Under the pieces are notes generated by a model. It worked only from the letters and a program-made list of their open reading frames with translations, was not told the origin of the DNA and did no database searches. From Phaeosaccion multiseriatum (lineage: Eukaryota; Protista; Ochrophyta, other classes), in the NCBI GenBank assembly GCA_965112735.1, contig OZ218965.1, forward strand, positions 2,356,001-2,420,000: DNA of 64,000 bases. The letters are read 5' to 3'. This document shows positions 32,351 through 53,631 of the stretch, piece after piece. The translations under genes were made by a program, and so were the position numbers. Each line of letters begins with the position of its first letter. Within the stretch, counting starts at the first letter, position 1.

Positions 32351-32382
32351 GTACCAGTCTAGCAAAAGCACGACTTCTAACA
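32351..32382. mobile_element. Isolated arm of the 89-bp palindromic mini-element terminus
   Basis: gtaccagtctagcaaaagcacgacttctaaca, identical to 38260-38291. Confidence 0.85.
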
Positions 32383-32599
32383 GTCCGCACAGTGTCCCTG
32401 CGAGTCACGCGCACGCACACACCGGGCAGGCAGGGCCACGGGCAGGGTTCCGGCCAGGGCTACAGACAGGGCGTGTTCGAGGAGCTGGGACTGCAGTGGT
32501 GCGAGGCCGTGCTGGGCACCTCCTCCGCCGCCTCCGCCGTGGAGAGGGCGGGGGCCGCACGGAGGGGAAGTGCCATGACCCCAGCCAGCCTCAGCCGAG

Positions 32600-35219: not shown

Positions 35220-35416
35220 CAGTTTCGCCGAAATTTTTTGAGGCTGATTCAGACTGCGAGTTACTTCTCTTCACCATGCGGTTGGGGGGGGGGGGGGTTC
35301 GACTTGCTTATAGCAACGGTCTTGTTAGAAGTCGTACTTTTGCTAGACTGACCTCCCGGCCGGTCTGAATTCAGAGGGTAGAGGTATCCGTCTAGCAAAG
35401 AGTACGACTTCTAACA
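35220..35416. mobile_element. Diverged, inverted partial copy of the palindromic mini-element (part of the internal region plus one palindromic terminus, 35323-35416)
   Basis: agactgcgagttacttctc..G-run..ttcgac is the reverse complement of 38292-38360, followed by tgttagaagtcg...cgacttctaaca. Confidence 0.85.
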
Positions 35417-35435: not shown

Positions 35436-35828
35436 TGTTGAAAATCAGTATAATGTCAATGGCCCAGGCCCAGGCCCAGGCAAATACGGTGAGAAACGGT
35501 GCGTGGCCCGTTTCTCACTCACCTCCCAGCAGGTTGGTCGCTCGTTTAGGATGGCTCACGGATAAAGCTAATAGAGACAAGGCTGGCTGCCAGGCTGGCT
35601 TTGGGGTTGCTATTACCTTGTCCATGCGGCTACTCCTATCCTAGGTGGAGAGCAACGTGACTCTTTACAACCCCAAAGCCAGCCTAGCAGCCAGCCTTGC
35701 CTCTACTAACTTATCGCATGCTAGTCCTAAACGACCACCTACGCACATAGGATAGTGAGAGCCACGCCACCCGTTCTCACCGCATCTGCCTGGGCCTGGG
35801 CCATTGACTTACGAATCGACTTTCCACA
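35436..35828. mobile_element. 393-bp foldback/MITE-like element with TG..CA ends and 4-bp TSD TCAT
   Basis: Long imperfect inverted arms (gtcaatggcccaggccc../..gggcctgggccattgac; ggctggctttggggttg/caaccccaaagccagcc); tcat at 35432-35435 and 35829-35832. Confidence 0.8.
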
Positions 35829-36052: not shown

Positions 36053-36383
36053 TACACTTCGTCCGAGGCCTCAGGAATCGAGAACCACTTGAGAACCACT
36101 TCGTCCGAGGCCTCAGGACTCGAGAACCACTTGAGAACCACTTCGTCCGAGGCCTCAGGACTCGAGAACCAGTGGAGAACCACTTCGTCCGAGGCCTCAG
36201 GACTCGAGAACCACTTGAGAACCACTTCGTCCGAGGCCTCAGGACTCGAGAACCACTGGAGAATCACTTCGTCCGAGGCCTCAGGACTCGAGAACCACTT
36301 GAGAACCACTTCGTCCGAGGCCTCAGGACTCGAGAACCACTTGAAAACCACTTCGTCCGAGGCCTCAGGACTCGAGAACCAGT
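36053..36383 (+). repeat. 42-bp subtelomeric satellite, proximal block (about 8 units)
   Basis: Unit GAGAACCACTTCGTCCGAGGCCTCAGGACTCGAGAACCA(GTG/CTT/CTG). Confidence 0.95.
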
Positions 36384-36583
36384 TGTAAAAGCGACCTAAG
36401 CCGCTTAGACAAGTGGTAACCCTTGATATATTATACGGGATGGAACCCGTTTGCAAGCCCTGCTGCTAGGCTCTCCTTATACCAAGATCACCGTTCTGAC
36501 ATCCTCCTCCACTCAGAATCTACGTAATATAGGACACACCGACCATTGACTTATGGTCCTTCTCGCTCTGAGGCCTTCCAACA
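36384..36583 (-). repeat. 3' LTR of element A
   Basis: Direct repeat of 53439-53631 (2 substitutions, 1 indel); adjacent purine tract on the minus strand. Confidence 0.92.
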
Positions 36584-36659
36584 TCCCCAATGCCTATCCC
36601 GTAACCTTCCAACATCCCCAATGCCTATCCCGTCTCTGCGACCACCACCACCGCAAGGT

Positions 36660-38202
36660 CTAGAACCCCAAATGTTGCGCCGTCTCCGCAGCGATGCCCA
36701 TCCCCCACTTCTCGTGCAACATGGCGCGCACGGTGCGCTCTCGTTTAGACCGCTGCCCACGCTTGCGCTGCACGCTCGGGTCCAACGCCCCTGGCGCCAA
36801 AGAGTCCTCGAATGCCTCTATTGCCGCCCTCTCCCCGCGCCGCAAGAGCCAATCGTCCCACTCCCACGTCTGATAACTGCCACCCTCCCGTACAGCCCAA
36901 CGGACACAGTACTCACGCCGTAGGGGCTGCCCTGTGGCCTTACGCCACCTCATCTTCACTATCCGCGCCAGGTTGGGCGCCCGCCCTATCCCAACCTCGT
37001 CATCGGTCACGCTACGCTTCTCCTGCAGTGCACTAGTACCCCAGTGGGCTGAGCAGTACCGGATGTGGTATCGAGCGAACCCATCTGGTAGTCCTTCCGG
37101 TTGGCCACTCACCCCATCAACGAACGGCTTGGTGAGGTCCCTATGGTACGCCCCTTGCTTGAACTCCACTCCCCCGCCTCTGACCCTCGGCACATCCAGA
37201 TACACCGTGCTACGGCGCATCACCGCGTAGTGCTCGTCGTTGAGTATGCCACCATGTCGCGCCTGGAAGGCCTGCTGTGTGGGCCAAGCCAGGACTTGGA
37301 ACGGTCCGTCCCAAGCATGACTCAGCGCCTTGAGCGTCAGTGCCTTCTGCTCCTCCATGGCCTCACCCTCCTCCTGCGCCGCCCCCCCTGGACGGTACAA
37401 CCACACCTTAGTGCCAGGAGGCATCGGCGCTGGCCAGCGACGCTCACGGTTCTTGAGCTGTAGCCTGCTGCGATACTCCTCGCGCCTGCCCGTCACCACC
37501 TGCGCCGCCGCTGCCATCCGCGCCCTCAGCTCGTGCACCCATGCCGAAGGCGTCTCGAACGAGCCGTCCTCCTCGAGGGCAGGCAGCATCGCTTGAAGTG
37601 GAATCGGGGGGTGTCGACCGAAGAGAGTGTAGTACGGGGAGAGGCCTGTGGTCTTGTGAGCTCTGCAGTTGTACGCGTACGTGAGCGCGGGAACATACTC
37701 AGGCCACTGCTGCATCTGGGCCTCCACTGTCGTCGCCAGCATGTCCTTCATCGTGGCCATGAAGCGCTCCACTTGCCCATTGGCTTGCTGATGCATCGGC
37801 GTAGTGAAGACTTGTGATGTCTGGAGTACGCGCAGCACATCGGCCATGAGCGTGCTCGTGAACTGCGACCCTTGGTCACTGACCAGCACCTTGGGCGCCC
37901 CCAGCACCGTCACTACGTGCCGCACGAATGCCCGAGCAATGCCCTCCGCTGTATAGTCCTTGGCGCACAATGGTACCACCACTGTCCATTTGGTGAACCA
38001 ATCTTGAAACACCAAAATGTACTCCTCCCCCCCCATGGCCATGGGGAAAGGTCCTGCCACGTCAGCACCCATAACCGCCCATGGCCCATTCACAGCCGCC
38101 GGTGATATGGACGAGAGCGGAACCTGTGGAGGCCGCCTCCGTGGTGTCTTGCGTGTCTGGCACGCAAGACATGAACGGGCCCAGTACAGCGCATGCCCGT
38201 TC
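36660..38202 (-). pseudogene. Element A integrase core, GPF motif and chromodomain (3' half of the split pol)
   Basis: GADVAGP, LVSDQGSQF, NGQVERF (DDE); WDGPF; IVKMR..EYCVRW..TWE. Continues the 51009-53438 frame when the insert is removed. Confidence 0.9.
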
Positions 38203-38515
38203 TGTTAGAAGTCGTGCTTTTGCTAGACTGGTACCTACCCTCTGAATTCAGACCGGGAGGTACCAGTCTAGCAAAAGCACGACTTCTAACAAGCCCTAAT
38301 GCTAGAAGTCGAACCCCCCCCCCCCCACCGCACATAGTGGAGAGAAGTAACTCGCAGTCTGGGAATCAGACTAATGGGTGCCAGCCGGTACCAGTTTTCG
38401 CCGAAAAACACACTTTTTTCACAAGCTACAGCCAGGATTCGAACTCGCAATGGCCTTGTTAGAAGTCGTGCTTTTGCTAGACTGGTACCTACCCTCTGAA
38501 TTCAGACCGGGAGGT
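38203..38515. mobile_element. Mini-element with palindromic terminal repeats: 89-bp palindrome (38203-38291), 165-bp spacer, second truncated copy (38457-38515)
   Basis: 34-bp perfect inverted arms tgttagaagtcgtgcttttgctagactggtacct around a tctgaattcaga centre; direct repeat of the unit at 38457. Confidence 0.88.
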
Positions 38516-38519
38516 TAGG

Positions 38520-38715
38520 TGTCGAAACTACCGACAGCTAGCCTCAAAGCCAAGCTAGAGCAGAGCAGGAGCTGAAGCAAGCACCCGGAAGCCAGCCCAC
38601 ACGCAGGCTGCGCTTCCTTCCTTTTATTACTGATTTACCGTCTAGTTGGCCCGTTTTCCGGCCGTTACACTACTGATTGGGTCCCCAAGGGACCCCAACT
38701 AGGCCACTTCTAACA
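38520..38715 (-). repeat. 3' LTR of element B
   Basis: Identical to 50813-51008. Confidence 0.96.
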
Positions 38716-38753
38716 TCCCCCTCACTACACCCCCGCCTCTTCCGCCAGCTCCC

Positions 38754-41700
38754 TCAGAAGCCGAGATGCGAGCGATAGAATTGCGTCTCGTGCGCCAGCC
38801 CGCTGCCCCACTTCTCATGTTGCCGCAGACGGATCGTGCTTTCCCGTTTAGACCTATGCCCTCTTTTGACATTCACTCCTGGATCAAGGGCAGTGTGCGG
38901 GAGGGCGTTCTCGAACGCCTCTATGGCCTTGGCGTGTCCCCGCTCCAGTAACCACTCAGCCCATTCCCAGGTCTGGAAAGTGCCGCCGTCCGACACCGCC
39001 CACCGCACGTTATACTCTCGCCGCAGTGGCAGCCCCGTGGCTTTGCGCCAGCGGAACTTCACAATCCTCGCCAGCGTGGGCACTTTCCCTTCACTCACCT
39101 CGTCCAGCTCTAAGCTACGCTGCTCCTGCATTGCGCTGGTAGCCCACTGAGGAGAGCACCAACGGATATGATACCTGGCGAACCCTTCCGGGAGACCGAA
39201 GGGCCGCTCGCTCACCCCATCGATGAACGGCTTCGTCAAGTCTCTGTGGTACGCCCGTTGCAGCTGCTCCACACCATTGCCGCGCACCCGTTTCATAGAC
39301 AGATACACTGCGCTGCGCTGCATGACCTGATAGTGCTCTTCACTCACCCGCCCATGCTGAGCACAGTAGGCCCCCAGAGCTGGCCAAGGCAAGACTGTAT
39401 AAGGACCATCCCACGAGTGCTGCAGAGCCTTGAGTTGCGCTGACGGGGGCCCTTCGAGTTCTTCCCCTTCTTGCTGGGCGGCGGCACCAGGACGATACAA
39501 CATCACCTTGGTTCCGGGTCGCAGGGGCGTCGGCCAACGGCGTGAGGCGTTCTTCAGCTGCAATCTCCCGTGGTAGTCGCAGCGCCTCCCATTGACCACC
39601 GCCGCAGCCGCAGCCAGACGTGCCCGCAGTTCGTGGACCCATGCCGAGGCAGACGAAAACGACCCGTCCTCCACTAGCGCCGGAAGCATCGCCTGTAGAG
39701 GCACCGGGGGGTGCCGACCGAACAAGGCGTAGAATGGCGCCATCCCCGTGCTCTCCTGCGAGCGGCAGTTGTACGCATAGGTGAGCCCGGCGACGTAATC
39801 TGGCCACTGCTGCATCTGTGACTCCACGGTCGTCGCCAACATGTCCTTGATCGTGGCCATGAAGCGCTCCACCTGCCCATTGGCCTGTTGGTGCATCGGC
39901 GTCGTGAACACTTGCGACGCCGATAGAACTCGCATCACATCGCCCATGAGCGCACTGGTGAACTGCGAGCCTTGATCACTCACCAGCACTCGGGGCACAC
40001 CCAGGGTGGTGACGACATGCCGCACGAAGGCCCGAGCAATACCTTCCGCCGTATAGTCCTGTGCCCTCAAAGGCACCACCACTGTCCACTTCGTGAACCA
40101 ATCCTGAAACACCAAGAGGTACTCCTCACCGCCCATGCCCATAGGAAAGGGGCCAGCCACATCAGCGCCCATGACCGCCCAAGGTCCATCCACCTTGGAA
40201 ATGGACGACAGCGGCACAGGCTTTGGCTGCCGGCGAGGAGTCTTGCGTGTCTGGCACGCCAGACAGGAGCGGGCCCAATACAGCGCATGTGCATTCATCT
40301 TCTCCCACCATACGCGCTCTTGCAGCGCGTCTAGCATACGTCCCGGGCCTTGGTGCCCACCTGCGATGGCATCGGTGTGGGCGGCATGCAGCAAGGCTGG
40401 CCGCATCTCCTTGGGCACACATACTTGTAGCCGAGTGTGCCGCACCCGCCACCGAAAGCCCCCAGGAGCCCACTTACGCATCAAGAGCCCGTCCTCATCC
40501 ACAAAGAACTCACCCCCACCTGCATCCACCACGCCGCCGGTGGGCCCAGCCTGAACACGGCGACGGAGTGCTTCCAGCTCCGCATCAGCCCGCTGCGCAC
40601 GCACCCACCACGCGGCCTCGACATGCAGACTGCCACCCAAAGCTCCAGCCGCTCGTCTGTGCGCCGCGGCAGCAGGCACCGTGCCTGGTAGAGACCACCC
40701 AAACTGTCGCTCTGCCTCTCGTCGATGCCCATCAAGCTCGCGCTGCAAGGTGGACTCCTGCTCCACCGGCTCCTTGGAAACTGAATCCACTGCCTCCTCA
40801 GCTTCATTATCCACTGCATCCGCAGCTTCATCACCTGCATCCCCCGCTTCTTCCGTGACCAGTAGATCTGCCGTACCAGGCTCCGACGGCGACTCCGCAG
40901 CAGGCGGCTCCCCAGGGTGGGTGATGCGGCCCTCCTCCGTAACAAGCTCCTCACCCTCGGTGGCACCAGCAACAGCAGCTGGACACACCTCCGAGGGCAG
41001 ACGAGACGCATCCTCCTCAAGCTCGGCCTCCCATGCAGCCCACGCATGAGCGGCCGCGGCACCCGTTTGCTGAGCCTCCGCTGGTGTGCACATCGAGAAG
41101 TAGTCACGCGACACCTGACGGACTTGCTTCCATGGCAACTCGATCATGGTATCTAGATGACTGGCCAACGCGCCCACCACCTTCCGCTGGCGCTTATATG
41201 TCCGCGTGAACCGCTCCACCATCTGCATCATTGTCTCCCACGAGCACTGCAGTTTGAATTGCAGTTTGGCCAGGTCGAATACCTCCAACGTCTTGGAGTG
41301 GACACCAAAGATGTAGAGCGGTGACACGTGGTCGCGATCGCCCCAATAACCAACCGCGGCCTGCATGAACCTGCCGACTTGCATCTCCTCCTGCTCCGCA
41401 GGGGTGTGAGCAGGGCTCATCGCGCTAAGCTCCACCCCCGGGCCACCATGGACGAACGGCACACACTCCGCCATGCGAGGCCAGAGGCGGAGGAGCGCCG
41501 CAGCGTCAGCAAACGCGTACTCCCGTTGAGCGGCGGACAGCGGCCGCTTCGTCCAATCGGTGGCCCGCTCCTCCTTGCTAAGGTGTTGCTCCAAAAACAT
41601 GCTGACAAGGTCCTGGAGTCCGATGAACTGAGTATGTTCGGGGCACACGCGCTTAAAGAGGTCACTGGTGTCCACCAAGTTGACGATGTGCTGGACATGC

Positions 41701-44700
41701 TCCGCGAGCTCCGGCCATCGGCCCAGGGCACGTTGGTCGTGACTCCAGTGGTGAGCCAGCTTCACAATCGAGGGTTCGGCCCACAGGTCCCGCAACACTT
41801 GCGCCAGTACCATCATACCCCCCGCCTTCTGAAGCGCGTCTAGATCAATCAAGAGCCCATAGTCACGCGCCACATCCGGCAGCGGCCCAACCTGCACGGC
41901 CAATTGCAGCAGCGACGCGCGCCGTCGGTGACGCGCCCACTCCGAATCCATAGCGACCACTTTGGCTGAGCGCAACTGAGTCGATAGAGCCTGCACGTGC
42001 CTCGGCGTAGACACGTACGTGCACCTCGCTGCGGAAATGTGACTCACAAATGGCGGCATCTGACCCGGCTGCCAGGCCTCTATCACAGCCTTCTTCACAC
42101 CCAGCTGAGGTGCTCGCGTAGGCTGCCATCCACATTGCTGAAGACGCTGTGTCCAAGCACGCCGAGCAGTACCCCTGCGTGACTGCGTCGCCGCCAAGTC
42201 CACCTCTGCAGTCTGCCAGGCTTGTAGGGCCTCCGCTCCGCTCTGCTGCTGGTGGTGGCACCGTTGCTGCTGTTGCTGGGCCGTCACGGCAGGCACAGGA
42301 ATAGGAAGGCGTGTGTCGGCTTCGCCCTGCAGCTGTTGCGCCACTGCGAGAAAGCGAAGCAGTGCGCCCTCCGTGGGCTCCTCCCAATGAAGGCTGCACT
42401 CGTCCCCTACCATCTCCACCAGGTTCAACTGCACCCCCATCGAAGCACACCAGGTGTGCAAGGGCGACGGCCACTCGCACGCAACCATGGCCAAGTCTAC
42501 CCCCGCATGCGTCTCCCACTCCTGCACCGGAAGCGCGTTGCGAGAGAGGCAGTCAGGCACCACCATTTGCTTCCCGGGACGATGCACAAACTGCAAGTGG
42601 TGCGTAGAGAGCCGCTCGTACCATCTGAACAGCTTGGAATTGGTATCCTTGTGCCCAGCCAACCACAACAAGGGCTGATGGTCCGTCACCACTGTGGTGG
42701 GGTAGTGGCAGATGTACATGGCCAGTTTGCGCACACACCACACCACTGCCAGCAGCTCCAGCTCCGTGCTGCTCAGTCGCGCCTCCGTCTCCGTGGTAGC
42801 CCGACTGATGAACGTCACCACACGCTCCTCCCCGGTCGCATCTTTCTGAGAGAGCACTCCTGCTAACCCTTCCGTCGAGGCATCGGTACTCAGGGTGAAA
42901 GTCGTCGCTGGCCCGTACTCCGGAAAAGCCAGTGCAGGGGAAGACAACAAGTCGGCAACGAGTCCATCCCAAGCTGCATCGTGCGAGGCATTCCAGGCGG
43001 TGCTCACGTCGACGCCCTTACGCAGCAGCCCATTGAGGGGCCGCACTTTGCGCGCAAACTCCGGAATGAAACGGCGAAAGTAGCTGAGCATGCCAATGAA
43101 ACGCCGCACCTGCTTAACTCGATTGACGCCGCCATCCTTCGCAAGCAACCTCAACGGCTTGACCAGCTCTTGCACCGCCGCATGCTTGGCCGGGTCTGTG
43201 CGCACCCCATTCTGATCCAGCAAATGCCCGCAGAACCGCACCTCCGGTGCACCCAATACAGCCTTACTCGGCTCCAACTTGAGCTTGTGCTCCACCAACC
43301 GCGCAAGCACAGCATCCAAATGCTCCAGATGCTGCTCAACCGTAGCCGAAAACACAGCAATATCGTCCACAAAGCATGCCACATGCTCCTGAAGCCCCTT
43401 GAGCACCTTGTTCATAAGCCGCACAAAGACTGCAGGCGCATTCTTCGCGCCCTGCGGCATCACTCGCCAAGCGTAAGTTCCACTGTGGCACACAAAGGTG
43501 GATATGTCCTCTTCCGCTGCTGATGCCATCGGCACATTGAAGTAGCCCGACATGATGTCCATCACCGAGAACACCTTGGAGCCATGCATCTCTGCCAGCA
43601 GATCATCAATCACCGGCATCGCAGGGGCCTCCGTGCGACACGCATCATTCAGCTGAGACAAGTCACACGTCATACGTACCACAGGCGTCCCATCCTCATG
43701 ACACTTGGTTTTGCCAGCTGCGTCCGTCTTCAAGACCGCCATCAGCGGAGTAGCCCAGCTGGAAGTGCTGGGGCGAATGATGGCAGCCGCGAGAAGCTTG
43801 TCAATCTCAATCTCAATCCCCCGCCGCAAATGTGGAGGATACCGTCGAGCGGAGCTCCGAATGGGCTGCTGATTCGCATCCTTCAGTCCCCACTCAAAGA
43901 AGAGAGTATCCGTCCGACCGTAGTCACCAGGCCTCTGACAGAATGCTTGCGACCGAGCGCGAAGGATCGCCACCAGTCCCCAGCGTTGCACCTCCGTCCA
44001 GGCACCGTCGCCAATCGTGATAGCGTGCAGGGGCGACGGTAGCTCCCTGAGCCAGAACTGAGCCCGCTCCGTAGTGAGCTTGGCACGGCGCCGCTGCTCC
44101 ACCACAAGCTCTCCTGCATCCCACGACTCCACTCCACCACCAAGACAGCGACTCTCCTGCAGCACCGTTCGCAATTGGATAAGGAGCAGCAGCGCATTGG
44201 TCATATCCTGCTCCACCTTCTCCTGCTGCTGTAATGGGCGACTAGACCACAACGACAAGAGCTGTTGGGCCCATGCGGCCACAGCAACGTCCCCAACGCC
44301 GCTCAGACCCGTGCCAGCGGCTTGGTGTACATGGGGGCGCAGGAGCAGTAGCGCGGTCACAGCCCCTTCCTCTGCCGCAACCAAGCACTCGCGCAGACGT
44401 CCATACACTCGCTCTGACAGGTGAGGGTACCACTCCTTGATCAACTGCACTCCTGCCATCAGAGTCCCACCGGACGTGTCACTCTGGCTACCGAGTCGCA
44501 AGGCACCATCCGCATCCAGTACCCACCCATCACCGCGTAGGTCAGTCAATGATGTGCCCACCGCCGCCGACGATGAACCTGCCTCGGACCGTAGTGGCGG
44601 TTCCTCCGACGCCACTGACGATGCCGCCCCTGGCGCAGGCCTGCTGGTGGAATCATCAGCCCCCGCCACGTGGTGGACCTGCAGCTGGCCTGTACGAGGC

Positions 44701-46700
44701 GGTCGGGGCTCCTGCAACTGTGTCTGACGGCGTCGCGCTACCGCCGCCGGAGCCACCTGCTGCTGTACCGCATTGGACCGCTGAACCTGCTGAGCTGCCG
44801 ACGAATCCGCTCGCTTAAAGAGCTCTTCCCGCTGGGCCTTGTGCCGTCGCTGCAATGCCCACTGGCGTTGCTGCCGTGCCTGCTGCTGTGCCGCTTGTAA
44901 CCGCTTGGCCTGCTGCGTTGCCAACCATGCTGCTGTCTCCTCCTTCGAGTCCACTCGTGGTGTGTCAGCTCGTCTGGCCGGCACTCGCACTATCCCCCCC
45001 CAGGAGGGCGCCAAGGGCACGCGACGCTCCCGCGGCACCTGTCGTTGCCCCAAGTCGCTCCCCCAAGCGAGACGAAGCCCTCGGTGATGCCAGGCGCAGG
45101 AGCCGTCAGCGCACAGCTCCCGTCGCAGCGGCAAAACTTGTCGTCGCACTTGCTCATGGCGCTCCAACACTGCTTGCCGATGAACCTGGTCCCACAGCAC
45201 AGGAGACTCCACAAGCATTGATGCCACTCTCCGACGTTGCCGCTGCAACCGCCCAGCACCCACTCGACTCTGACGACACTGACTCCCCTTCTTGCCGCTG
45301 CGCTGCAAATGCTGAAACCGGGCCTTCACTGCCGGCTGAGGCACCAGAGTCGATGGCACCCCCACCTCAGTCCGTGGGTGCGTCAGGGCCTGCACCTGCA
45401 CAGCTTGCAGCGGAAGCGCCGTAGCCCCCAGCTCAGCCTCCTCTGGTACCACCGAGCAGCGAACTACAGGCCCCTGCGGTGGGCACCAGACCGGCTCAGC
45501 TCCTGCTTCAGCTTCAGCCGGCTGCTGCGACGCCTCCTCCTCCACCACAGACTCAACCGCCTCCCGCGCCTTGGACCATGGCAGCCTGCGCTTCACCACA
45601 CGCCTCACCATCCCGCCAAGAGCACCAAGCCAGGAGGAAGGGGCCGCTGCAGTCTCCGGCATGGTATCTGAAGAAGCCGGCTCAGCGAGCATGAGCGCGG
45701 CCACCTCAGCGCTCGCCTCCGAGTCGAGCAAGCAAGAAGCGGTGCCGATGACCTGCCCAGGAACGACCACAATGACCTGATTGTGGTGATTCTGCACTGT
45801 GATTCGGTAACTCTGCCCCCCAGCATACACACCATCTTTGTGCGCCACTAGAACCTGCTCGTGCTCCAGCCACCATAGAACGTCCGCCTCTGCCGCCAAG
45901 TGTCCGTGAGCGCCCAGCTCCACCACCGCCTGGACACCCTCAACGATACCCGTAAGCTCGAGGAGAAGGGACCCCGTCTGTCCAGGTCCCAAGCTCAAAG
46001 CCTCCACCGCACGTACCCCCCCAACAGCAGCGTTGCCGTCCACCACTGCCAGCACTTGCACAGCCAAGGCATCGGACGGACGAGCATCCGACGTGGCCTC
46101 CTCCGAAGGAGTCGGAAGTACGTAGAGCTGCTTCGCACGATGATCGACGACTGCCCCTACTTGGGTGAAGAAATCCTGCCCCAAGAAGATGGGCCGCGCC
46201 AAGTGGTCCACCACATGAAAGGGTAGCACCGGCTGGCACGTCGGCGTGAGTCCCACCTGAAGCCAAACAAGCCCTCTGGACATGGTCTTGGCACGATTGT
46301 CAGCGTAAGACACCTGCACCCCCTTCTGCGTGGCGAGCTCTGACCGCTCCACCGTGCCATCCGCCACCAGTTGATTGAAGCAGGCTGTCGAGATGCAGCC
46401 CGCTCCTGTGCACCCACTGTCCATCAAGGCTGTAAAGGCGCTCTTCTCCACGGCGTCGGCGGCACTGGCATCCCGTGGAGCGGTAGCAGCCAAGCAATGC
46501 CGAGCGTCACTGACCTTCACTGGCGAGCGCACCGTAACCTCGATCGTGTGGCCCCGCCCTGCTGGGACTGCCGTACGACCCGTGGCAGCCACCGCTTCGG
46601 CAATCTCAGCTCTCCGCACTGCTGTCTGCAAGGCGGCCACCCCCCCGGAGCGTCCTCCATCCGCACACGGTAGAGAGCCAAGGCAGCGCGTTGCACACAC
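38754..46700 (-). CDS. pol: Pol polyprotein: aspartic protease, dUTPase-like segment, long spacer, RT, RNase H, DEDDy 3'-5' exonuclease, unknown domain, integrase, chromodomain
   Basis: LMDSGC; MDIMSGYFNV, MPQGAKNAP, FVDD; STDAS, ELELLA, TDHQPL, PDCLSR; AMDSEW..HDQRAL..YAFAD; H-H-C-C, D-D-E, GPY; EYNVRW..TWE. Confidence 0.95.
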   Translation of the reverse strand: MCATRCLGSLPCADGGRSGGVAALQTAVRRAEIAEAVAATGRTAVPAGRGHTIEVTVRSPVKVSDARHCLAATAPRDASAADAVEKSAFTALMDSGCTGAGCISTACFNQLVADGTVERSELATQKGVQVSYADNRAKTMSRGLVWLQVGLTPTCQPVLPFHVVDHLARPIFLGQDFFTQVGAVVDHRAKQLYVLPTPSEEATSDARPSDALAVQVLAVVDGNAAVGGVRAVEALSLGPGQTGSLLLELTGIVEGVQAVVELGAHGHLAAEADVLWWLEHEQVLVAHKDGVYAGGQSYRITVQNHHNQVIVVVPGQVIGTASCLLDSEASAEVAALMLAEPASSDTMPETAAAPSSWLGALGGMVRRVVKRRLPWSKAREAVESVVEEEASQQPAEAEAGAEPVWCPPQGPVVRCSVVPEEAELGATALPLQAVQVQALTHPRTEVGVPSTLVPQPAVKARFQHLQRSGKKGSQCRQSRVGAGRLQRQRRRVASMLVESPVLWDQVHRQAVLERHEQVRRQVLPLRRELCADGSCAWHHRGLRLAWGSDLGQRQVPRERRVPLAPSWGGIVRVPARRADTPRVDSKEETAAWLATQQAKRLQAAQQQARQQRQWALQRRHKAQREELFKRADSSAAQQVQRSNAVQQQVAPAAVARRRQTQLQEPRPPRTGQLQVHHVAGADDSTSRPAPGAASSVASEEPPLRSEAGSSSAAVGTSLTDLRGDGWVLDADGALRLGSQSDTSGGTLMAGVQLIKEWYPHLSERVYGRLRECLVAAEEGAVTALLLLRPHVHQAAGTGLSGVGDVAVAAWAQQLLSLWSSRPLQQQEKVEQDMTNALLLLIQLRTVLQESRCLGGGVESWDAGELVVEQRRRAKLTTERAQFWLRELPSPLHAITIGDGAWTEVQRWGLVAILRARSQAFCQRPGDYGRTDTLFFEWGLKDANQQPIRSSARRYPPHLRRGIEIEIDKLLAAAIIRPSTSSWATPLMAVLKTDAAGKTKCHEDGTPVVRMTCDLSQLNDACRTEAPAMPVIDDLLAEMHGSKVFSVMDIMSGYFNVPMASAAEEDISTFVCHSGTYAWRVMPQGAKNAPAVFVRLMNKVLKGLQEHVACFVDDIAVFSATVEQHLEHLDAVLARLVEHKLKLEPSKAVLGAPEVRFCGHLLDQNGVRTDPAKHAAVQELVKPLRLLAKDGGVNRVKQVRRFIGMLSYFRRFIPEFARKVRPLNGLLRKGVDVSTAWNASHDAAWDGLVADLLSSPALAFPEYGPATTFTLSTDASTEGLAGVLSQKDATGEERVVTFISRATTETEARLSSTELELLAVVWCVRKLAMYICHYPTTVVTDHQPLLWLAGHKDTNSKLFRWYERLSTHHLQFVHRPGKQMVVPDCLSRNALPVQEWETHAGVDLAMVACEWPSPLHTWCASMGVQLNLVEMVGDECSLHWEEPTEGALLRFLAVAQQLQGEADTRLPIPVPAVTAQQQQQRCHHQQQSGAEALQAWQTAEVDLAATQSRRGTARRAWTQRLQQCGWQPTRAPQLGVKKAVIEAWQPGQMPPFVSHISAARCTYVSTPRHVQALSTQLRSAKVVAMDSEWARHRRRASLLQLAVQVGPLPDVARDYGLLIDLDALQKAGGMMVLAQVLRDLWAEPSIVKLAHHWSHDQRALGRWPELAEHVQHIVNLVDTSDLFKRVCPEHTQFIGLQDLVSMFLEQHLSKEERATDWTKRPLSAAQREYAFADAAALLRLWPRMAECVPFVHGGPGVELSAMSPAHTPAEQEEMQVGRFMQAAVGYWGDRDHVSPLYIFGVHSKTLEVFDLAKLQFKLQCSWETMMQMVERFTRTYKRQRKVVGALASHLDTMIELPWKQVRQVSRDYFSMCTPAEAQQTGAAAAHAWAAWEAELEEDASRLPSEVCPAAVAGATEGEELVTEEGRITHPGEPPAAESPSEPGTADLLVTEEAGDAGDEAADAVDNEAEEAVDSVSKEPVEQESTLQRELDGHRREAERQFGWSLPGTVPAAAAHRRAAGALGGSLHVEAAWWVRAQRADAELEALRRRVQAGPTGGVVDAGGGEFFVDEDGLLMRKWAPGGFRWRVRHTRLQVCVPKEMRPALLHAAHTDAIAGGHQGPGRMLDALQERVWWEKMNAHALYWARSCLACQTRKTPRRQPKPVPLSSISKVDGPWAVMGADVAGPFPMGMGGEEYLLVFQDWFTKWTVVVPLRAQDYTAEGIARAFVRHVVTTLGVPRVLVSDQGSQFTSALMGDVMRVLSASQVFTTPMHQQANGQVERFMATIKDMLATTVESQMQQWPDYVAGLTYAYNCRSQESTGMAPFYALFGRHPPVPLQAMLPALVEDGSFSSASAWVHELRARLAAAAAVVNGRRCDYHGRLQLKNASRRWPTPLRPGTKVMLYRPGAAAQQEGEELEGPPSAQLKALQHSWDGPYTVLPWPALGAYCAQHGRVSEEHYQVMQRSAVYLSMKRVRGNGVEQLQRAYHRDLTKPFIDGVSERPFGLPEGFARYHIRWCSPQWATSAMQEQRSLELDEVSEGKVPTLARIVKFRWRKATGLPLRREYNVRWAVSDGGTFQTWEWAEWLLERGHAKAIEAFENALPHTALDPGVNVKRGHRSKRESTIRLRQHEKWGSGLAHETQFYRSHLGF

Positions 46701-47774
46701 CCCTCACACATATCACACTCACTGTCAACAGCCGACGCACAGGCACAAGCTCCCGGACTGGGGGGCTCCTTGAGCAGAGCGACTCCCGCGCCAGGCTCCA
46801 AGGCTACTGCATGACAAGCACGCACAAACGGATCAAGGGCAAGCGTGTGCAGCCCCGCCTCCTCCGTCAACACCGCCGTGAAAGCAGCCTCCTGCTGATG
46901 CTGCTGTGCTGCTGCTGTCGCACGAGCACGCTGCCTCCGCTGCTTCCTCCGTACCCGCCGTCGAAGAGCTACTGCGCGCCTCGCTGCATCCTGCTGCTCC
47001 TGTGCCGCCTGCTCGTCACCCTTGCGCAGCGCTGCCTTCGCCTGCTGGGCACGCCGTCTCAACCACTTTGCTGCCACCCTCTGCTCAGTCCTGCTCCGCC
47101 CCTCCGCCGGAGGCACCGCTGGAGACGTCAGCGGCAGGGTCCGAAGGCTCTGCTCCTGCTGCTGAAGCTGAACCTCCTCCTGCTGCTGAAGCTGAACCTG
47201 CCACGCCCACTGTTCATGTTCCCCCGTGGGAGTGAATGGCGGAAGAGATGCTGCCCCGAGCGGTAAGGCCCGCACGAGGCCCATGGCCTTGGCCTGGCGA
47301 GGCGTCACCAGGGAGCACAGCTGCTGAGGCTGAAGCTCATCGCTTGACGGTGGGCTGGCTTTTGCAACCTGGACGGCAGCCTCGACAGCATGACCCTGCT
47401 GCTGCTCCAATTGCTCCTGCTGCCCCCCCGCCACCTGCGGCTGCTGCTGCAGCAGCTGCTGCTGCTGTCCCAGCCGCTGTTGCCGCTCCTTCGCCGCACG
47501 CAGTGCGCGCTGTTCCGGGAAGGCACACGCACGCACCCGCTCCAAACCCCTTGCATCCATCCAGACAGACTCGTGTTGCGCAACGGTTGCCGCCTCGCAC
47601 TCAACCTCCCCCACTGCCGACGGTGGCACCTGCTGCTCCGGACACTCACCCGCAACGACTGCATCCTCCTGGCGCAGAGGCAGCGGCAGCGCGACGTCAG
47701 GTCCGCTCGACGGCTCGACGGCAGAGCCGGGCTGCGGTGCTTCGACTAAGCACACGGAGCGTACCACTGGACAC

Positions 47775-47807
<33 letters not shown>

Positions 47808-48448
47808 GGCGGCGGCAGCTGCTCGACTGCGGAAGCCGCTGGCGCAGCCTCCTGGTGCGCGCCCTCCACGACTACCTCTACTGCACGCTGCGCCTGCTGC
47901 TGTACCGCCGTCATCGTCGTGTGCTCACCAGCAACGACTGCATCCGGGCCGTCAGTGCCCCGCGACTGCTCGACCACAGAGCGTACCACAGGACCCGGCT
48001 GCTGGCGCTGCGGCTGCGGCAGCTGCCGCTCCGACGCTGGCAGCTGCTCGACCGCGGACGGCGCAGGCACAGCCTCTCTGTGCGCACCCTCCACGACTGC
48101 CTCTACGACACGGCGCTGCTGCTGCTGCTGCTGCTGCTGCAGCTGCTGCTGCTGTTGCTGTTGCCGTTGTAGCCGAGCACGTTTGAGTCTGTCGCCACAC
48201 CACATGTCACTCCGATAAACTCTGATGGCAGGTGACTCCTGCTCTACACGACTAGCCTGACCGCTCCTACGCTGAGCGTCGGCATGGGGCAAAGGTGGGT
48301 CTGACAAACAAGATAGGTGCGAAGTACATTCATTATCTTCTACACTGCTCTTGCCCGCCCTCCCCCCCTGTTCCCCCACGCCGACGCTATCCTCACGCGC
48401 GGCGGTCGTGGTCCCCAGGGCTGCTGGCCAAGCAGCCCCGGGGCACCG
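46517..48448 (-). CDS. Q/E-rich intermediate ORF of element B, in frame with gag behind a single UGA
   Basis: No stop between 48448 and 46517; repeated AVEAVVEGAH.EA.PA.SAVEQLP modules. Confidence 0.6.
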
Positions 48449-48749
48449 TCAGCCTTCGAACTTGAACCCGTCCTGCGCCGCCAGAGTGCCCGCCACCATT
48501 GCTGCTACGGCTTCAGACATGTCGGACTCCTGGTGCTGCGCTCTGACCGCCTGCCGCCGCTGCACGCGACTCACAATGCCGAGCAGCTCCTCACGCGTAG
48601 CGGGGATGGCGTTGCATTCTATCCATCCATGGCCGGCGCGGCGACAAGTCATGCAGTTAAATGGGGCATTGCCGTTGCCACGCTGCTTCACCGAGCCGTG
48701 GAACAGCAAGGGCCGCTGCTGGGTGGGCGTGAGCCGCGGCTGCTGCGCC

Positions 48750-48784
<35 letters not shown>

Positions 48785-50670
48785 TGCATTCACCCCCACC
48801 TCCTGTGACGGCTGATGGTCCAGATGCTGCTCCACCGAATTCACGGCCACTTCCAGATGCTGCTCCACCGCATTCACGGCCACTCCCCCGCGCGGAGTGC
48901 GCAGACCACCACCACCACCACCACGGGCCCGCGTAGCCCCACCAGTAGAAGAGAGCGTAAGTGGGCTACCAGCCTGGAGCACCCGAGTCGCGGAAGGAAA
49001 TGCCTTCTGGAAGGCGGCGTAGAAATCACTCCACGAGGGAGTCGCCGACTCCCAGCGCAGCCAGAAGTTGGTCATGCCGTCAGTTAATGGCAACGAGCCG
49101 TGACGAAGCCGAATCTCGACCTCTGGCCGCAGCACCGCCAGCAGGCCCGTAACCAAGGCTTGCTCATCCGTGGCCTGCCCCGTCACCTGCGCCAGACACA
49201 GAGAGAGTTCCGCCAGCTTGGTGAGCAGCCTGGCGAGCGCCTGGTTCACCTCGGCAGGAACGGTGGACGCTTCCAGAGGCTTGGCCTCCCGCACCAACGT
49301 CTGGACAAGCTGCTGGAGGCCGTCTCGCGCAACAGGAACGCCGAAGAGACGCAACAGACACCTCGCGAGCAATTGGAACTGTGCACTCTCCGTCTCCCAC
49401 TCCAATGTGACGTGCTGGTCGCCCTCCATCCACGACGCACCCTTCTGAGCCTCCGCCAGGACAGTGGCCCGATCCACTGCACCCAAGTCGGCCAGCACTC
49501 GCTGCTCCATCACCCGCCCTTGGCCCGGAAGCACGGACCCAGTAGAAGTCAAGATCTCCTGTCCTTGCAGAATGCTCACCCAGTTGTACATGCGTGCGAG
49601 CACCACAGCACGAGGATGAGGCTGTCCAGCCGCATCGAATAGAGAGGGAAGTTTCTGCTCCTGGAGCACACGGATAGCACCCACGGGCAGCGTGATCGTC
49701 TGCACCGTATGACGGGCGGGCGCCTGCAGCACATCCAGGGCCTGCTGCCGTGCCCGCTCCCGCTCCCGTTCCATGTCCCGCTGTAGCATATCCTTAACCT
49801 GCTGCTGCAGCACCTCTACCCCCCCGGTGCGGCATCCTTAACCTGCTGGAGCTGCGCCGCTAACAGCTCCCGCTGCAACGTCTCCACCTCCAACTGGGCA
49901 GCACCCTCAGGCGGCCGCTTCGGCGGCGGCTGCGCCGCCATCTGTCGCTGCAGCTCCGCCGCCACCTGCTGCTGCAGCTCCACCGCAAACTTCCGCTGCT
50001 GCTCCGCCCCCCGCGAGAGCCGCAGCACCTCCAGTTCCCGCTGGAGGGCCGCCGTCTCCGCCTTGCTCTCCCGCAGTTGGGCCGCCATGAGCTGCGCAGC
50101 TTGGTGCTGCGTCAGCATCTCAAGCCCCTCCTGGAGAACCCGCGTGTCCTCCTGCTCCGGTGTCTTCTCTCCCTCCGCTGGCTGATCCACCACCCGAGCC
50201 CCGCCAGACGCACCAACAAGAGGGACCAAGGGCGTGCCAACCACATCCCACACCGTGCTCTCCTCCTGGCCCACCGACTCTGCATCCCCCGAGTCCTCCT
50301 GGCCCACCGACTCTGCATCCCCCGAGTGGAAGGAAACCTCCGACGCCGCCACCGTCAGCGGCCTCACCCCAGCAGCAGGAGGGGAAGCGGCAGCAGCCGT
50401 AATCGCAGACCCCTCAAAAAAAGAGGGCGACTCCAGGGACTCCTCCCCCCGACGCAACGCCGCCCGCACACGGTCCACAGCCCCAGGGCTGGCAGTGACC
50501 TCCGCAGGAGGAGCAGCAGCTTCCGATACCACAGACCCCACGTCCGCAGCACCACCATCAGCTCCACCGCCCTCAGCGTCACTCGTAGCGCCCTCCGCCG
50601 ATGAAAGACTCAGGAAGTCCCCCTCCTCAGCCCTGGCCACCCTAGCAGCGTGGAACCGCAGGAAGTCCAT
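48449..50670 (-). CDS. gag: Gag of element B, two segments separated by a frame break at the G7 run (49819-49825)
   Basis: ATG 50670; coiled-coil N-terminal part; zinc knuckle CMTCRRAGHGWIEC (CX2CX4HX4C). Confidence 0.8.
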
Positions 50671-50803
50671 CCCCGCCTCAGCCAGTGCCACCCTAGCAAG
50701 CCCAAAGCTGTCTACGGCCTAAAGCTGGGCAGCTGGAAGCAAAGCTCAAGCCAACACAATAAATCAGCCTCAAAGCTGGATCTCAGACCTGTGTCTTTCG
50801 GGT

Positions 50804-50812
50804 CTTCCGGGT
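50804..50812 (-). promoter_or_regulatory. Putative self-priming primer-binding site (ACCCGGAAG)
   Basis: Immediately follows the 5' LTR; complementary to LTR 50876-50884; lacks the TGG of a tRNA PBS. Confidence 0.7.
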
Positions 50813-51008
50813 TGTCGAAACTACCGACAGCTAGCCTCAAAGCCAAGCTAGAGCAGAGCAGGAGCTGAAGCAAGCACCCGGAAGCCAGCCCACACGCAGG
50901 CTGCGCTTCCTTCCTTTTATTACTGATTTACCGTCTAGTTGGCCCGTTTTCCGGCCGTTACACTACTGATTGGGTCCCCAAGGGACCCCAACTAGGCCAC
51001 TTCTAACA
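50813..51008 (-). repeat. 5' LTR of element B
   Basis: Identical to 38520-38715; TAATAAAA at 50915-50922. Confidence 0.96.
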
Positions 51009-53438
51009 GTTCATGGAGGGCCACCACACTCGCTCCTGCAGCGCATCCAGCATCCGCCCTGGCCCGTGATGGCCGCCTGAGACCGCATCGCCGTGCGTGG
51101 CATGCAGCAGGGCCGGCCTGAGCGCCTTGGGGACGCAGAGCTGCAACCTCGTTCGCTCTACCCGCCACCGTCGCCCCCCGGGGGCCCACTTGCGGCGAAG
51201 GACGCCATCGCCATCGAGAGAGAACTCCCCCCCGCCCGCATCGAACACCCCCTCGCCTGGGGAGGCTGCCAAGACCTTCTGACGCCACCCCTCCAACTCA
51301 GCGTCCTGCTGCTGCGCCTTCACCCACCACGCGGGCTGGTAAGTCCGAGCCCCATGCAATATGCGGGCTGCGCACGACTGCTCACCCACTGCCGGGGGAA
51401 CACCAGGGAGGGACCACCCAAATTGCCGCGTAGCAGCCTGCCTTGCGGCCTCCACGTCTGCCAGCGCTGCTGCCTCGCTCGCCGCAGCCGCATGGGCATC
51501 GGTGTCAGCCGCTAGAGTCGCTCCAGCCTCTCGTCCCTCCACCCCCGTGGCCGAGCCGCCAACTGTGAGTCCGCCGCCTCCTCCTCCTCCTCCTCCTCCG
51601 CCTCCTCCTCCTCCTCCTCCTCCTCCTCCTCCTCCTCCTCCTCCTCCTCCTCCTCCTCCTCCTCCTCCACCTCCGCCGCCGCCGCTGCCGCCGCCTTCAA
51701 CCCCTCCTCCGCCGCCTGCACCACCCGCACCGTCACCGCCGCCGGCTGTGGCGTCTGCTGGGGCCGCAGGCGGTGTGCGCTCCGCCTCCACCGTCGATGC
51801 ACCCACCACGCCCGCGGCCTCGACGGCGGCAGGGATGTCCCACGCCACACCTTGGGTTTGCCACTGCTGCTGGGCCTCTGTGGGGGTCACCATGGTGTAG
51901 TAGCCGCCCGTATCTGCGGCGATGGCACTCCACGTCTTCTCAATCATAACCGCTCGAGGTAGTGACAGCTTGCCACGCCTCCGCGCCGCGGCCGGCCGAT
52001 AGCGCGCCCTGAACTGCTCCACTGCGTCCATGAGCTCCGTCCAGGTCCACTGGGGATGTCGGTAAGAAAGAAGGATCAGGTCGATCATCTCCACTGACTT
52101 AGCGGTCGCTGAGAAAATGAAGAGCGGACTGGCGTGCTCCCGATCGGCCCAATACCCCACCCCGGCAGAGACGAACTGTCCTGCGCGCATCTCAGCACGC
52201 GTCACACCCGCCCCCCCGCTATCCACCGCGCTCACTTCCATCGCAGACGGCACCGGAACTGCACAAGCCCGCATCTTCGGCAACAACTGTAGTAATGCGG
52301 CCACATCGTCGAAGGCATAGCTGAGCTGGGCCGCAGTGAGCTCCCGCTGAGTCCAATCCGTCTTCTGCTCCTCCTTGCTCATAAAACGCTGCAGGAACAT
52401 ACTAACCAGGTCTGCTAAGCCAATGGGACGGCAGTGCTCAGGCCACACCTCCTTGAATAAATGCGTCGTGTCGACCAAGTTGGCGATGGTCCACACATGC
52501 GGCGCCAACGCCGGCCACTTCCCTAGGGCACGCTGGTCGTGACTCCAGTGATGCGCCAGCTTCATAATCCCCCCGTCGCCCCACAGCTCACTCAGCACCG
52601 CCGCCAGCGCCTCCATACCACCATTGCCACTCAAACTGTCCAAATCCACCCAGAACCCACAATCACGCTCCGAATTGGCGACGCCGCTATACTGAACACC
52701 CAACTGCAGCAGAGACGCCGGCCGAGGAGGAGTGCGTATAGCCCACTCCGAGTCCATGGCCACCACTGTCGCCTCCCGCAGTGCCGCTCGCATGTCCCAC
52801 ACCTGCTCCTCCGTGCGTATGTACGTGCACCGCGCTGCTGGCACGTGGCTGAGAAACAGCGGCAGCTGAGACCACTCCTCTATCACCCGTTTCTTCTCGT
52901 TGATGTGGGACAGGGTCACTGGAGCCCAGCCACATTGCCGCATCTGCTCCACGTGCTGCAGCCGAGCCGACCCGAAGCCGCCTGGCGCCTCGACCGCCAC
53001 ACTGTCCACGCACAGCGCCTCCAAACCTGCCGACGCCTGCTGTCTCGCCGTGACCGACGAGAGCCCCTCCATAGGCACTGACTGAGCCGCCACCGCCTCC
53101 CCTTGCAACTGCTGCGCCGCGGCAGCAAACCGCAGCACCGCACCTTCCACCGGATCCTCCCACCCTAACGCGAGGGTGTCACCCACCACATCCACCAACG
53201 CCACCTCCACTCCCACCGCATCACACCACTCAGTCACAGGCAAGGGGTCGCGTGACAAGCAGTCAGGCACCACAAGCTCCCGCCCCGGTTTGTGGACAAA
53301 CTTGAGATGATGAGCAGAGAGCCGTTCATACCACCGAAAGAGCTTGGAGTTGGTGTCCTTGTGTGTCGCCAGCCACAGCAATGGTTGGTGGTCCGTCACC
53401 ACCGTGCAGGGATGGTGGCAAATGTACATGCTCAACTT
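51009..53438 (-). pseudogene. Element A pol fragment: RNase H C-terminal half, DEDDy exonuclease, unknown domain, poly-Gly linker, integrase zinc-finger N-half
   Basis: TDHQPLLWL..PDCLSR; AMDSEW..HHWSHDQRAL..YAFDD; HATH..GGHHGPGRMLDALQERVWWPSMN. Confidence 0.9.
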
Positions 53439-53631
53439 GCGACCTAAGCCGCTTAGACAAGTGGTAACCCTTGATATATTATACGGGATGGAACCCGTTT
53501 GCAAGCCCTGCTGCTAGGCTCTCCTTATACCAAGATCACCGTTCTGACGTCCTCCTCCACTCAGAATCTACGTAATATAGGACACACCGACCATTGACTT
53601 ATGGTCCTTCTCGCTCCGAGGCCTTCCAACA
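53439..53631 (-). repeat. 5' LTR of element A (7 bp of the U5 end missing, fused to RNase H)
   Basis: Direct repeat of 36391-36583. Confidence 0.9.

Follow-up and report, generated by a model that had tools for sequence, protein, structure and literature searches.

A retrotransposon and a palindrome-ended mini-element joined within one target duplication: capture in a break or integration of a chimeric DNA?

How does a complete LTR retrotransposon come to lie in a genome without a target duplication of its own, sharing a single duplication with a small element at its side? This question is raised by a joined pair, consisting of a 12.5-kb retrotransposon (here called B) and a small mini-element with hairpin ends, which is found inside an older retrotransposon (A) in a stretch of 64,000 nucleotides (the window). 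We regard the composite as the product of an unusual event at one locus, either a repair or the formation of a chimera, and not as a new kind of system.

The borders of the composite are marked by two copies of GTTC, at 38199-38202 on the left and at 51009-51012 on the right, which were assigned from the sequence and from a frame test over 70 residues that span the joint of A as it would be with the insert removed. When position 38202 is joined to 51013, the minus strand carries an open frame (...ERVWWPSMNGHALYWARSCLACQTRKTPRR...), and the restored integrase frame of A is collinear with B (...ERVWWEKMNAHALYWARSCLACQTRKTPRR...) without any gap. The insert therefore comprises exactly 38203-51008 plus one GTTC. 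A four-base match at fixed borders has a chance of 1/256, and exact restoration of the frame is stronger evidence than this match. The outer tips of the composite are inverted, with TGTTAGAAGT at 38203-38212 on the plus strand and at 50999-51008 on the minus strand; in the whole window, 10 matches to this motif with at most one mismatch were observed, while 2.1 are expected. The terminal 10 bases (ACTTCTAACA) are common to the palindrome end and the LTR end of B, and the sharing covers exactly these 10. The preliminary description had already reported the bracketing by GTTC, the return of the frame of A upon excision of 38203-51008 and one GTTC, the inverted termini and the lack of an own duplication of B (left flank TAGG, right flank GTTC), and all of this holds.

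Element A lies on the minus strand between its 3′ LTR (36384-36583, sense start TGTTGGAAGG) and its 5′ LTR (53439-53631), which has lost the U5 tip. Pairwise comparison gave 99% identity between the two (191/193), with the tips TGTTGGAAGG...TTTTACA. Besides the U5 tip, the primer-binding site, gag, protease and reverse transcriptase (RT) have been deleted from A, and its internal part begins within RNase H: the ORF at 51003-53504 starts at position 62 of the RNase H profile and retains everything from the RNase H tail through the integrase. A is a dead element, and it is older than the composite inserted into it. Its 4-bp target duplication, CAGT, can be read directly at 36380-36383 and 53632-53635, and removal of A together with one CAGT restores a 42-bp unit of a subtelomeric satellite. 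Duplications of 4 bp are typical of the lineage of A and B, CAGT being an example. The locus is near a chromosome end.

Element B (38520-51008, minus strand) has two LTRs of 196 bp, at 38520-38715 (3′) and 50813-51008 (5′). They are identical at all 196 positions and complete at both tips (TGTTAGAAGT...TTTCGACA); at the U5 tip (38520) not even the final base is lost, and the U3 tip of the 5′ LTR abuts GTTC. On the same strand, a polypurine tract (PPT; 38716-38743, sense ...GAGGGGGA) adjoins the 3′ LTR and is followed by a pol ORF of 2648 aa (38754-46700). According to its Pfam domains (RVT_1, RT_RNaseH, Integrase_H2C2 and rve, in this order), this ORF codes for RT, RNase H and the zinc finger and core of an integrase, with a 3′-5′ exonuclease (PF01612) between RNase H and integrase. 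Three further ORFs in different frames (620, 454 and 291 aa; 46517-50691, minus strand) lie upstream; in the approximately 7 kb of ORFs upstream of RT, no Pfam match of any kind was obtained, even at E = 5, so that neither gag nor protease was recognised. A primer-binding site of 9 bases (50804-50812, minus strand, sense ACCCGGAAG) lies directly beside the 5′ LTR and is the complement of sense bases 125-133 of the LTR (50876-50884 in the window), about 30 bases past a TATA-like motif. In this respect B appears similar to the self-priming Ty3/gypsy elements of the Tf1 type, a likeness that would concern the replication of B, not the composite joint. With their direct TG...CA LTRs and the order RT, RNase H, integrase, both A and B can probably be assigned to Ty3/gypsy (Metaviridae-type). 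The corresponding target duplication is present for A (CAGT) and for B and mini-element together (GTTC), while B alone is flanked by TAGG and GTTC.

The mini-element is also read on the minus strand. Its palindrome 1 (38203-38291, 89 bp), which takes the place of the 3′ repeat when the element is read in its inferred sense, was recognised by sequence comparison and folding; the computed hairpin reaches -44.8 kcal/mol (z = -16), and both tips are of the U3 type (TGTTAGAAGT ... ACTTCTAACA). The internal part (38292-38456) is non-coding on reading the sequence, its ORFs being short and due to chance only. On the minus strand, a PPT-like GCATTAGGGCT abuts palindrome 1 and is similar in sequence to the PPT of A (GCATTGGGGA); the core also contains a G13 run and, near palindrome 2, a B-box-like GAGTTCGAATCC. 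Palindrome 2 (38457-38515, minus strand) is truncated: compared with palindrome 1 it is identical at 59 of 59 positions (bases 1-59), and the final 30 bases are absent. This anatomy is as given in the preliminary description, in which the coordinates need small corrections: 38203-38291 for the first palindrome, a start at 38457 for the second, and four bases (38516-38519) that are part of neither partner. A complete mini-element would have about 343 bp, namely the 89-bp palindromic repeat, a core of 165 bp and the repeat again. Its tips probably copy the U3 tip of the Ty3/gypsy lineage of A and B. Derivation from A or B by deletion was rejected, as similarity is confined to the tips. Next to the 5′ repeat, neither a complementarity of at least 6 bases to the own repeat nor a start complementary to a tRNA was found that would represent a primer-binding site. 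ARAGORN and Rfam detected no tRNA in the mini-element and Rfam assigned no family; a tRNA or SINE identity was rejected, as ARAGORN found none and Rfam produced only sub-threshold microRNA-hairpin matches, which are caused by the palindrome.

Two further members of this palindrome family occur in the window, both on the plus strand. A 33-bp relic (32350-32382) consists of TGT and palindrome bases 60-89 (32/32 identical) and is flanked by GTCC at 32346-32349 and 32383-32386. This separate duplication shows that members of the palindrome family insert in the absence of B. Exactly those 30 bases which are missing from palindrome 2 of the composite are retained in the relic, and its breakpoint (GGT/ACC) is that of palindrome 2, which suggests a recurrent break site. 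An older partial copy (35221-35416, about 83% identical) comprises the 3′ part of the internal region and one palindrome, a single full one at 35323-35416. A mini-element with two full palindromes was not found in the window, all three instances being incomplete.

At the joint between truncated palindrome 2 and the intact U5 end of B, four filler bases, TAGG, are found (38516-38519). TAGG is absent from the LTR of B and from palindrome 1, which has ACCA at that place. Together with the preceding GGT the filler reads GGTTAGG, which is in the telomeric register and on the telomere-directed strand. An origin from primer or primer-binding sequence was rejected (on the sense strand of B the filler is CCTA, and the primer-binding site of B starts with ACCC), as was a copy of neighbouring palindrome sequence. 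Joints made by integrase leave no filler behind. Given the filler and the missing duplication of B, the U5 joint was therefore not made by integrase.

We tentatively favour a history in two steps, with integrase acting in the first one only, although we give it somewhat less than an even chance. The mini-element of about 343 bp would have integrated into the integrase gene of A, creating the GTTC duplication. Later, palindrome 2 would have broken at GGT/ACC, four bases into the hairpin stem, and a full-length linear cDNA of B would have been trapped in the break. At one side, the chromosomal 3′ end (...GGGAGGT) may have gained TAGG and been ligated to the intact U5 tip of B by non-homologous end joining. 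At the other side, the U3 tip of B may have annealed by way of the 10 bases that it shares with the outer palindrome end, and the remaining 30-base arm would have been trimmed as a flap, as in microhomology-mediated joining, with the result that the final base of B now abuts the GTTC of the mini-element. We infer in which order the events took place, that there was a break and how it was repaired; the borders, the filler, the identity over 10 bases, the 4-bp duplications of the lineage and the independent insertion of the palindrome family are observed.

Several observations argue for such a capture. The frame of A is restored and GTTC is duplicated; the duplication has the length known from the lineage (CAGT of A, where the satellite unit is restored), and the palindrome family inserts alone with 4 bp (GTCC, 32346-32386). 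B has complete tips and LTRs identical at 196/196 positions, with TAGG and GTTC as flanks, and the filler is foreign to palindrome 1 although the palindromes match at 59/59 positions. The palindrome forms a strong hairpin, as calculated above, and long palindromes are known break sites. Palindrome end and LTR end agree over exactly the 10 terminal bases, and the GGTTAGG register of the filler is compatible with a free chromosomal 3′ end having been extended. The composite combines a filler at the U5 end with 10 bases shared at the U3 end, and B lacks a duplication. In yeast, LTR-retrotransposon cDNA has been captured at chromosomal breaks by end joining (PMC10802722, PMC1976456), but the captured pieces are mostly short (PMC10802722), and capture of a cDNA of 12.5 kb whose U5 tip was left untrimmed is rare. 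In addition, none of the three mini-elements in the window has the two full palindromes that this history starts from, the head-to-tail arrangement of B and mini-element, with one inferred sense for both, is predicted only half the time, and the telomeric reading of a 4-base filler may be due to chance (1/256, judged post hoc).

Nearly as likely is a single integration of a chimeric DNA, in which the U5 end of B had been joined to a mini-element cDNA whose 5′ repeat lacked bases 1-30. Inside the particle or in the nucleus, RT could have jumped end to end between templates, adding four untemplated bases, or two unintegrated cDNAs could have been linked by end joining. Integrase would then have used the U3 tip of B and the outer U3-type tip of the mini-element, inserting 12.8 kb and making GTTC at once. 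This would account for the single duplication around the whole composite with TGTTAGAAGT at both outer tips, for the U5 tip being exact to its final base, as when a strand reaches its template end, and for the absence from the window of any mini-element with two full palindromes. It is also in line with the head-to-tail arrangement in one inferred sense and with the similarity of the PPT-like motif at palindrome 1 to the PPT of A. The retained layout R-U5-core-U3-R-U5 would be that of an unfinished cDNA if the RNA starts at repeat base 31. As both tips of the mini-element are of the U3 type, integrase evidently accepts such pairs. However, a non-homologous join of two different cDNAs is required, followed by successful integration, for which we know of no natural precedent. 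The predicted start at base 31 implies a U3 of 30 bases without a visible promoter, and a recognisable primer-binding site is missing from the mini-element; the telomeric register of the filler and the breakpoint shared with the relic are explained more simply by breakage of a chromosomal hairpin. A probability slightly below that of this history as a whole applies to the more specific claim that integrase, in a single act, placed a chimera of 12.8 kb, made of a complete Ty3/gypsy element and a palindromic mini-element in truncated form, by means of two inverted U3-type tips and no U5 tip. An integration of chimeric DNA by two U3-type ends had been offered as one alternative in the preliminary description; it gains from the head-to-tail orientation and is nearly as likely as break repair. 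The other alternative offered there, insertion of B into palindrome 2 with deletion of the rest, is compatible with the data when modified, except for an integrase-made U5 joint, which is at odds with the TAGG filler. If the mini-element came first, B was joined by break repair and not by insertion and subsequent deletion.

Plain nesting without further change is excluded by the TAGG filler. A serial version, in which the mini-element came first, B was integrated into an already altered palindrome 2 with TAGG as its duplication, and the TAGG on the right was lost with the remainder of the arm through slippage from one ACTTCTAACA repeat to the other, is improbable: the 10-base direct repeat favours such a deletion, and internal deletions do occur in the palindrome family (the 33-bp relic), but as far as the joint the palindromes are identical at 59/59 positions, and TAGG is absent from palindrome 1 there and beyond, so that an earlier, undetected change of palindrome 2 must be assumed, and three or four events are needed instead of two. 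It is very improbable that the composite is an assembly artefact caused by a false join at the palindrome or the shared 10-mer. Misassembly is classically met with at palindromes and repeats; yet an artefact is not expected to yield the exact frame of A, a perfect 4-bp duplication and two complete, identical LTRs, and a long-read assembler would not be misled by a repeat of only 10 bases. Two other histories were rejected. If B had come first and the mini-element second, GTTC would have to be reused and then lost, and read-through transduction of a flanking mini-element would result in a normal B cDNA, as the first strand transfer lands on the internal R.

The likeness to Ty1 cDNA capture, of which yeast reports from 1996 are the classic accounts, consists in a filler at one side, microhomology at the other and a captured element without its own target duplication. 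It differs in that the element at hand is complete, with 12.5 kb and two intact LTRs, that the event is one that we infer, and that the hairpin which would have broken belongs to a parasite element sharing the terminal 10 bases of the cDNA. In nested LTR elements, a lost duplication is usually ascribed to recombination between copies at different loci. The unmatched flanks of B correspond to those of nested elements without own duplication (nesting survey PMC6911290), but a single site in A accounts for both flanks of the composite, and a filler is present at the odd joint. TRIM elements resemble the mini-element in being small and non-coding, in their TG...CA tips and PPT-like tract and in a presumed dependence on an autonomous LTR element (PMC10886601). 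A complete mini-element would also share with them a pair of identical terminal repeats, which here agree over the 59 bases present in palindrome 2, and a 4-bp duplication. TRIM elements differ from it in that its repeat is an 89-bp near-perfect palindrome with U3-type tips at both ends, no primer-binding site is recognised and no complete copy occurs in the window; as to the duplication, GTTC brackets mini-element and B together, while the 33-bp relic has its own GTCC. Such a mini-element with palindromic repeats represents an undescribed layout among small non-autonomous elements.

Ginger DNA transposons have TGTNR termini and 4-bp duplications and are integrase-related, and their inverted repeats have been proposed to come from two opposed LTR ends flanking an integrase gene (PMC2836005). 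The composite has this proposed geometry, with inverted TGTTA/TGTTG termini (TGTNR), a 4-bp duplication and an implied Gypsy-type integrase. In contrast to Ginger, there is no CCGG specificity of the target, and B, with its direct LTRs, is an ordinary retrotransposon. An integrase-like transposase without RT was not found in the window, where all integrases belong to pol genes that contain RT.

Although its reach is limited to a single locus in one protist, the composite preserves a base-exact joint between a U5 tip and foreign DNA which was not made by integrase and lies within a perfect duplication of the integrase type. If B was captured in a break, this bears on how often hairpin-ended parasites trap the cDNA of their own helper. 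If a chimera was integrated, Gypsy-type integrase can insert DNA with two U3 ends in nature, which bears on the origin of integrase-derived transposons; together with the mini-element family this would mean that this particular integrase moves any DNA bounded by two U3-type tips, and the composite would be a natural example of the step from LTR ends to inverted repeats that has been proposed for the origin of Ginger-like DNA transposons.

In searches for relatives, the palindrome arm had no match in an exact-pattern scan of contigs from metagenomes and prokaryote genomes, a profile-guided locus search of metagenome and viral contigs with an integrase alignment gave no confirmed match, and look-ups of the exact products (the ORFs of B and A and two small ORFs of the mini-element) found nothing on record. 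Word-index protein searches with the pol of B and its integrase part returned nothing closer than 34% identity, apart from one fragment that is similar to A. This fragment (P0037), which lies on a Logan contig of 1288 bp from run SRR29999185, is 88.8% identical to A at the DNA level over 36591-37881 and ends before both the LTR and the GTTC site. A human origin was rejected: the GC content of the window is 62%, and the best protein matches of the host gene are from oomycete and xanthophyte sequences, with about 40% identity.

Element B, a full-length LTR retrotransposon (38520-51008, minus strand), and the mini-element, a small non-coding element with palindromic ends (38203-38515), lie side by side within the integrase gene of element A, an older LTR retrotransposon on the same strand. 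In the preliminary description, the two were taken as a single composite insertion bracketed by one target duplication, and this holds. GTTC is found at both borders (38199-38202 and 51009-51012), and as B is flanked by TAGG on one side and by GTTC on the other, it has no target duplication of its own. The empty site of A was assessed by its reading frame over 70 residues across the joint of 38202 with 51013. This joint yields an open minus-strand frame (...ERVWWPSMNGHALYWARSC...), which aligns without gaps and collinearly with the corresponding region of B (...ERVWWEKMNAHALYWARSC...). Because removal restores the frame free of gaps, the insert comprises exactly 38203-51008 and one copy of GTTC. 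The composite joint is real, well preserved and odd, and we consider an assembly artefact to be very improbable.

The borders of A were obtained from a self-comparison of the window and by direct reading of the sequence. Its LTRs (36384-36583 and 53439-53631, minus strand) are 99% identical, and CAGT occurs on both sides of the element (36380-36383 and 53632-53635). When A and one CAGT are taken out, a unit of a 42 bp satellite is restored, which shows that the lineage of A and B makes 4 bp duplications and that A was inserted into a subtelomeric satellite. This satellite (about 54 units, at 53632-55548 and in a block at 36055-36383), split by A with its CAGT duplication, precedes 8.4 kb of TTAGGG repeats, including some TTAGG variants, which extend to the end of the window (55549-64000). 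The window has a GC content of about 62% and is a chromosome end. Element A is dead. Its 5′ LTR has lost the U5 tip, and what remains of the interior runs from within RNase H through a 3′-5′ exonuclease domain and integrase. A perfect 31 bp tandem duplication in A (36574-36633) takes in the polypurine tract together with 10 bases from the start of U3.

Element B has 196 bp LTRs that are identical to each other, and a pol ORF of 2648 residues (38754-46700) that codes for RT, RNase H, a PF01612 3′-5′ exonuclease and integrase. For the approximately 7 kb of B ORFs upstream of RT no family match was obtained, and gag and protease were not recognised there. A polypurine tract adjoins the 3′ LTR, while the 5′ LTR is adjoined by a 9-base site (50804-50812) which is complementary to LTR bases 125-133 (50876-50884 in the window). 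The match in the LTR is located about 30 bases past a TATA-like motif, and its chance occurrence at that position has a probability below 0.001. A primer-binding site that is complementary to the own LTR is shared with self-priming elements of the Tf1 type and suggests that B may prime itself in the same manner. In both pol genes the PF01612 domain is found between RNase H and integrase (residues 1562-1744 of the pol ORF of B, residues 227-412 of the A ORF at 51003-53504), and the same architecture is present in one metagenome protein (P0029). A and B are Ty3/gypsy-type elements carrying an accessory exonuclease domain, which has already been reported for polyproteins of LTR retrotransposons (PMC6338049).

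The mini-element is made up of palindrome 1, a non-coding core of 165 bases, and part of palindrome 2. Palindrome 1 (38203-38291) is a near-perfect hairpin of 89 bases (-44.8 kcal/mol, z = -16); only the first 59 bases of palindrome 2 persist in the composite, and these are identical to palindrome 1. Both tips of palindrome 1 read TGTTAGAAGT, ten bases that are the same as the U3 tip of B and agree with that of A at 8 of 10 positions. With at most one mismatch, this motif has 10 matches in the whole window versus 2.1 expected. On the minus strand, the end of the core beside palindrome 1 (GCATTAGGGCT) resembles the polypurine tract of A (GCATTGGGGA), and we therefore took this strand as the sense strand, as in B. 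Beyond the tips, the mini-element has no similarity to A and B. It presumably works like a TRIM (PMC10886601), from which it differs by its palindromic repeats and in that no primer-binding site was found; a tRNA-like fold was not found in it either. TGTNR termini and a 4 bp duplication are common to Gypsy LTRs and Ginger transposons (PMC2836005), and the mini-element fits this pattern, but neither an RT-less transposase nor excision, as for Ginger, was seen here. The core (38292-38335, 38420-38456) carries a degenerate extra palindrome tip, TGCTAGAAGTCG, and a run of 13 C, and also a B-box-like GGATTCGAAC followed by TTTTT on the opposite strand; a tRNA or SINE was not recognised in it.

An older partial copy of the mini-element is located at 35221-35416. 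In addition, there is a palindrome relic of 33 bases (32350-32382) with GTCC on both flanks (32346-32386). It consists of TGT and palindrome bases 60-89, exactly the 30 bases that are missing from palindrome 2 of the composite, and is most simply explained as a solo palindrome which lost one arm and the loop. Its own GTCC duplication indicates a palindrome family that inserts on its own. The breakpoint GGT/ACC is common to the relic locus and the composite within a 2-base ambiguity, for which the chance is about 0.05 to 0.1.

Between palindrome 2 and the U5 tip of B, which is complete at this joint, there is a filler, TAGG (38516-38519), that is absent from palindrome 1 (which has ACCA at that place) and from the LTR of B. 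To our knowledge, integrase joins leave no filler, and we thus ascribe the inner joint to end joining or a polymerase jump. It had also been proposed that B inserted into palindrome 2 and that the remainder was deleted through shared microhomology. Because the filler is found at the intact U5 tip, ordinary nesting with a simple deletion is insufficient. Nesting into a palindrome that had already been altered, followed by slippage, seems unlikely. GGTTAGG, the sequence formed by the filler and the GGT before it (38513-38519), is in telomeric register on the strand running toward the telomere; a random 4-mer would do so in 1 of 256 cases, and the match was spotted after the fact. The filler hints at extension of a free chromosomal 3′ end; GGTTAGG may have been left at a break by telomerase or through telomere-templated fill-in, unless it is due to chance.

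We tentatively favour a history in which the mini-element came first and a cDNA of B was later captured in a break of the second hairpin. Integration of the mini-element would have created the GTTC duplication, and the second hairpin would then have broken at GGT/ACC, with linear B cDNA being captured in the break. The U5 tip would have been attached through end joining with filler, and the U3 tip through annealing of the ten shared bases, the 30-base rest of the arm being trimmed. Two events would account for every border, all by known processes, and capture of Ty1 cDNA at breaks has been documented (PMC10802722, PMC1976456). Nearly as likely is the first proposal of the preliminary description, a chimeric DNA integrated by two U3-type ends. 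In this case, the U5 end of B DNA would have been linked to a mini-element cDNA that was still incomplete, and integrase would have inserted this chimera by its two U3-type tips. The exact U5 tip of B, the head-to-tail arrangement of the two elements, the layout of the retained mini-element part as R-U5-core-U3-R-U5, and the lack of a complete mini-element within the window speak for the chimera. Against it, this layout presupposes an RNA that begins at repeat base 31, for which the sequence gives no indication, and a natural precedent is not known to us.

Searches of metagenome, prokaryote and viral contigs or proteins retrieved no further copies of B, the mini-element or the joint. The only relative found was a contig of 1288 bp from Logan run SRR29999185 (L001) with an integrase fragment of the A family, which reaches neither LTR nor the GTTC site. 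At the DNA level the contig matches A (36591-37881) with 88.8% identity, and this run is therefore from the same or a related organism. A host ORF (16531-17865) codes for a MINDY-3/4 deubiquitinase domain; its closest proteins, from oomycetes and the xanthophyte Tribonema, are about 40% identical, and hence the host lineage is poorly sampled. We regard the host as a GC-rich protist that has not been sampled before, possibly a stramenopile, and a human origin is rejected. tRNA genes were not found within the window. At 35455-35808, an additional long hairpin (about 355 bp) has a perfect outer stem of 21 bases and inner stems of 35 and 45 bases; it gives a sub-threshold MIR844-like match in Rfam and may be another foldback element.
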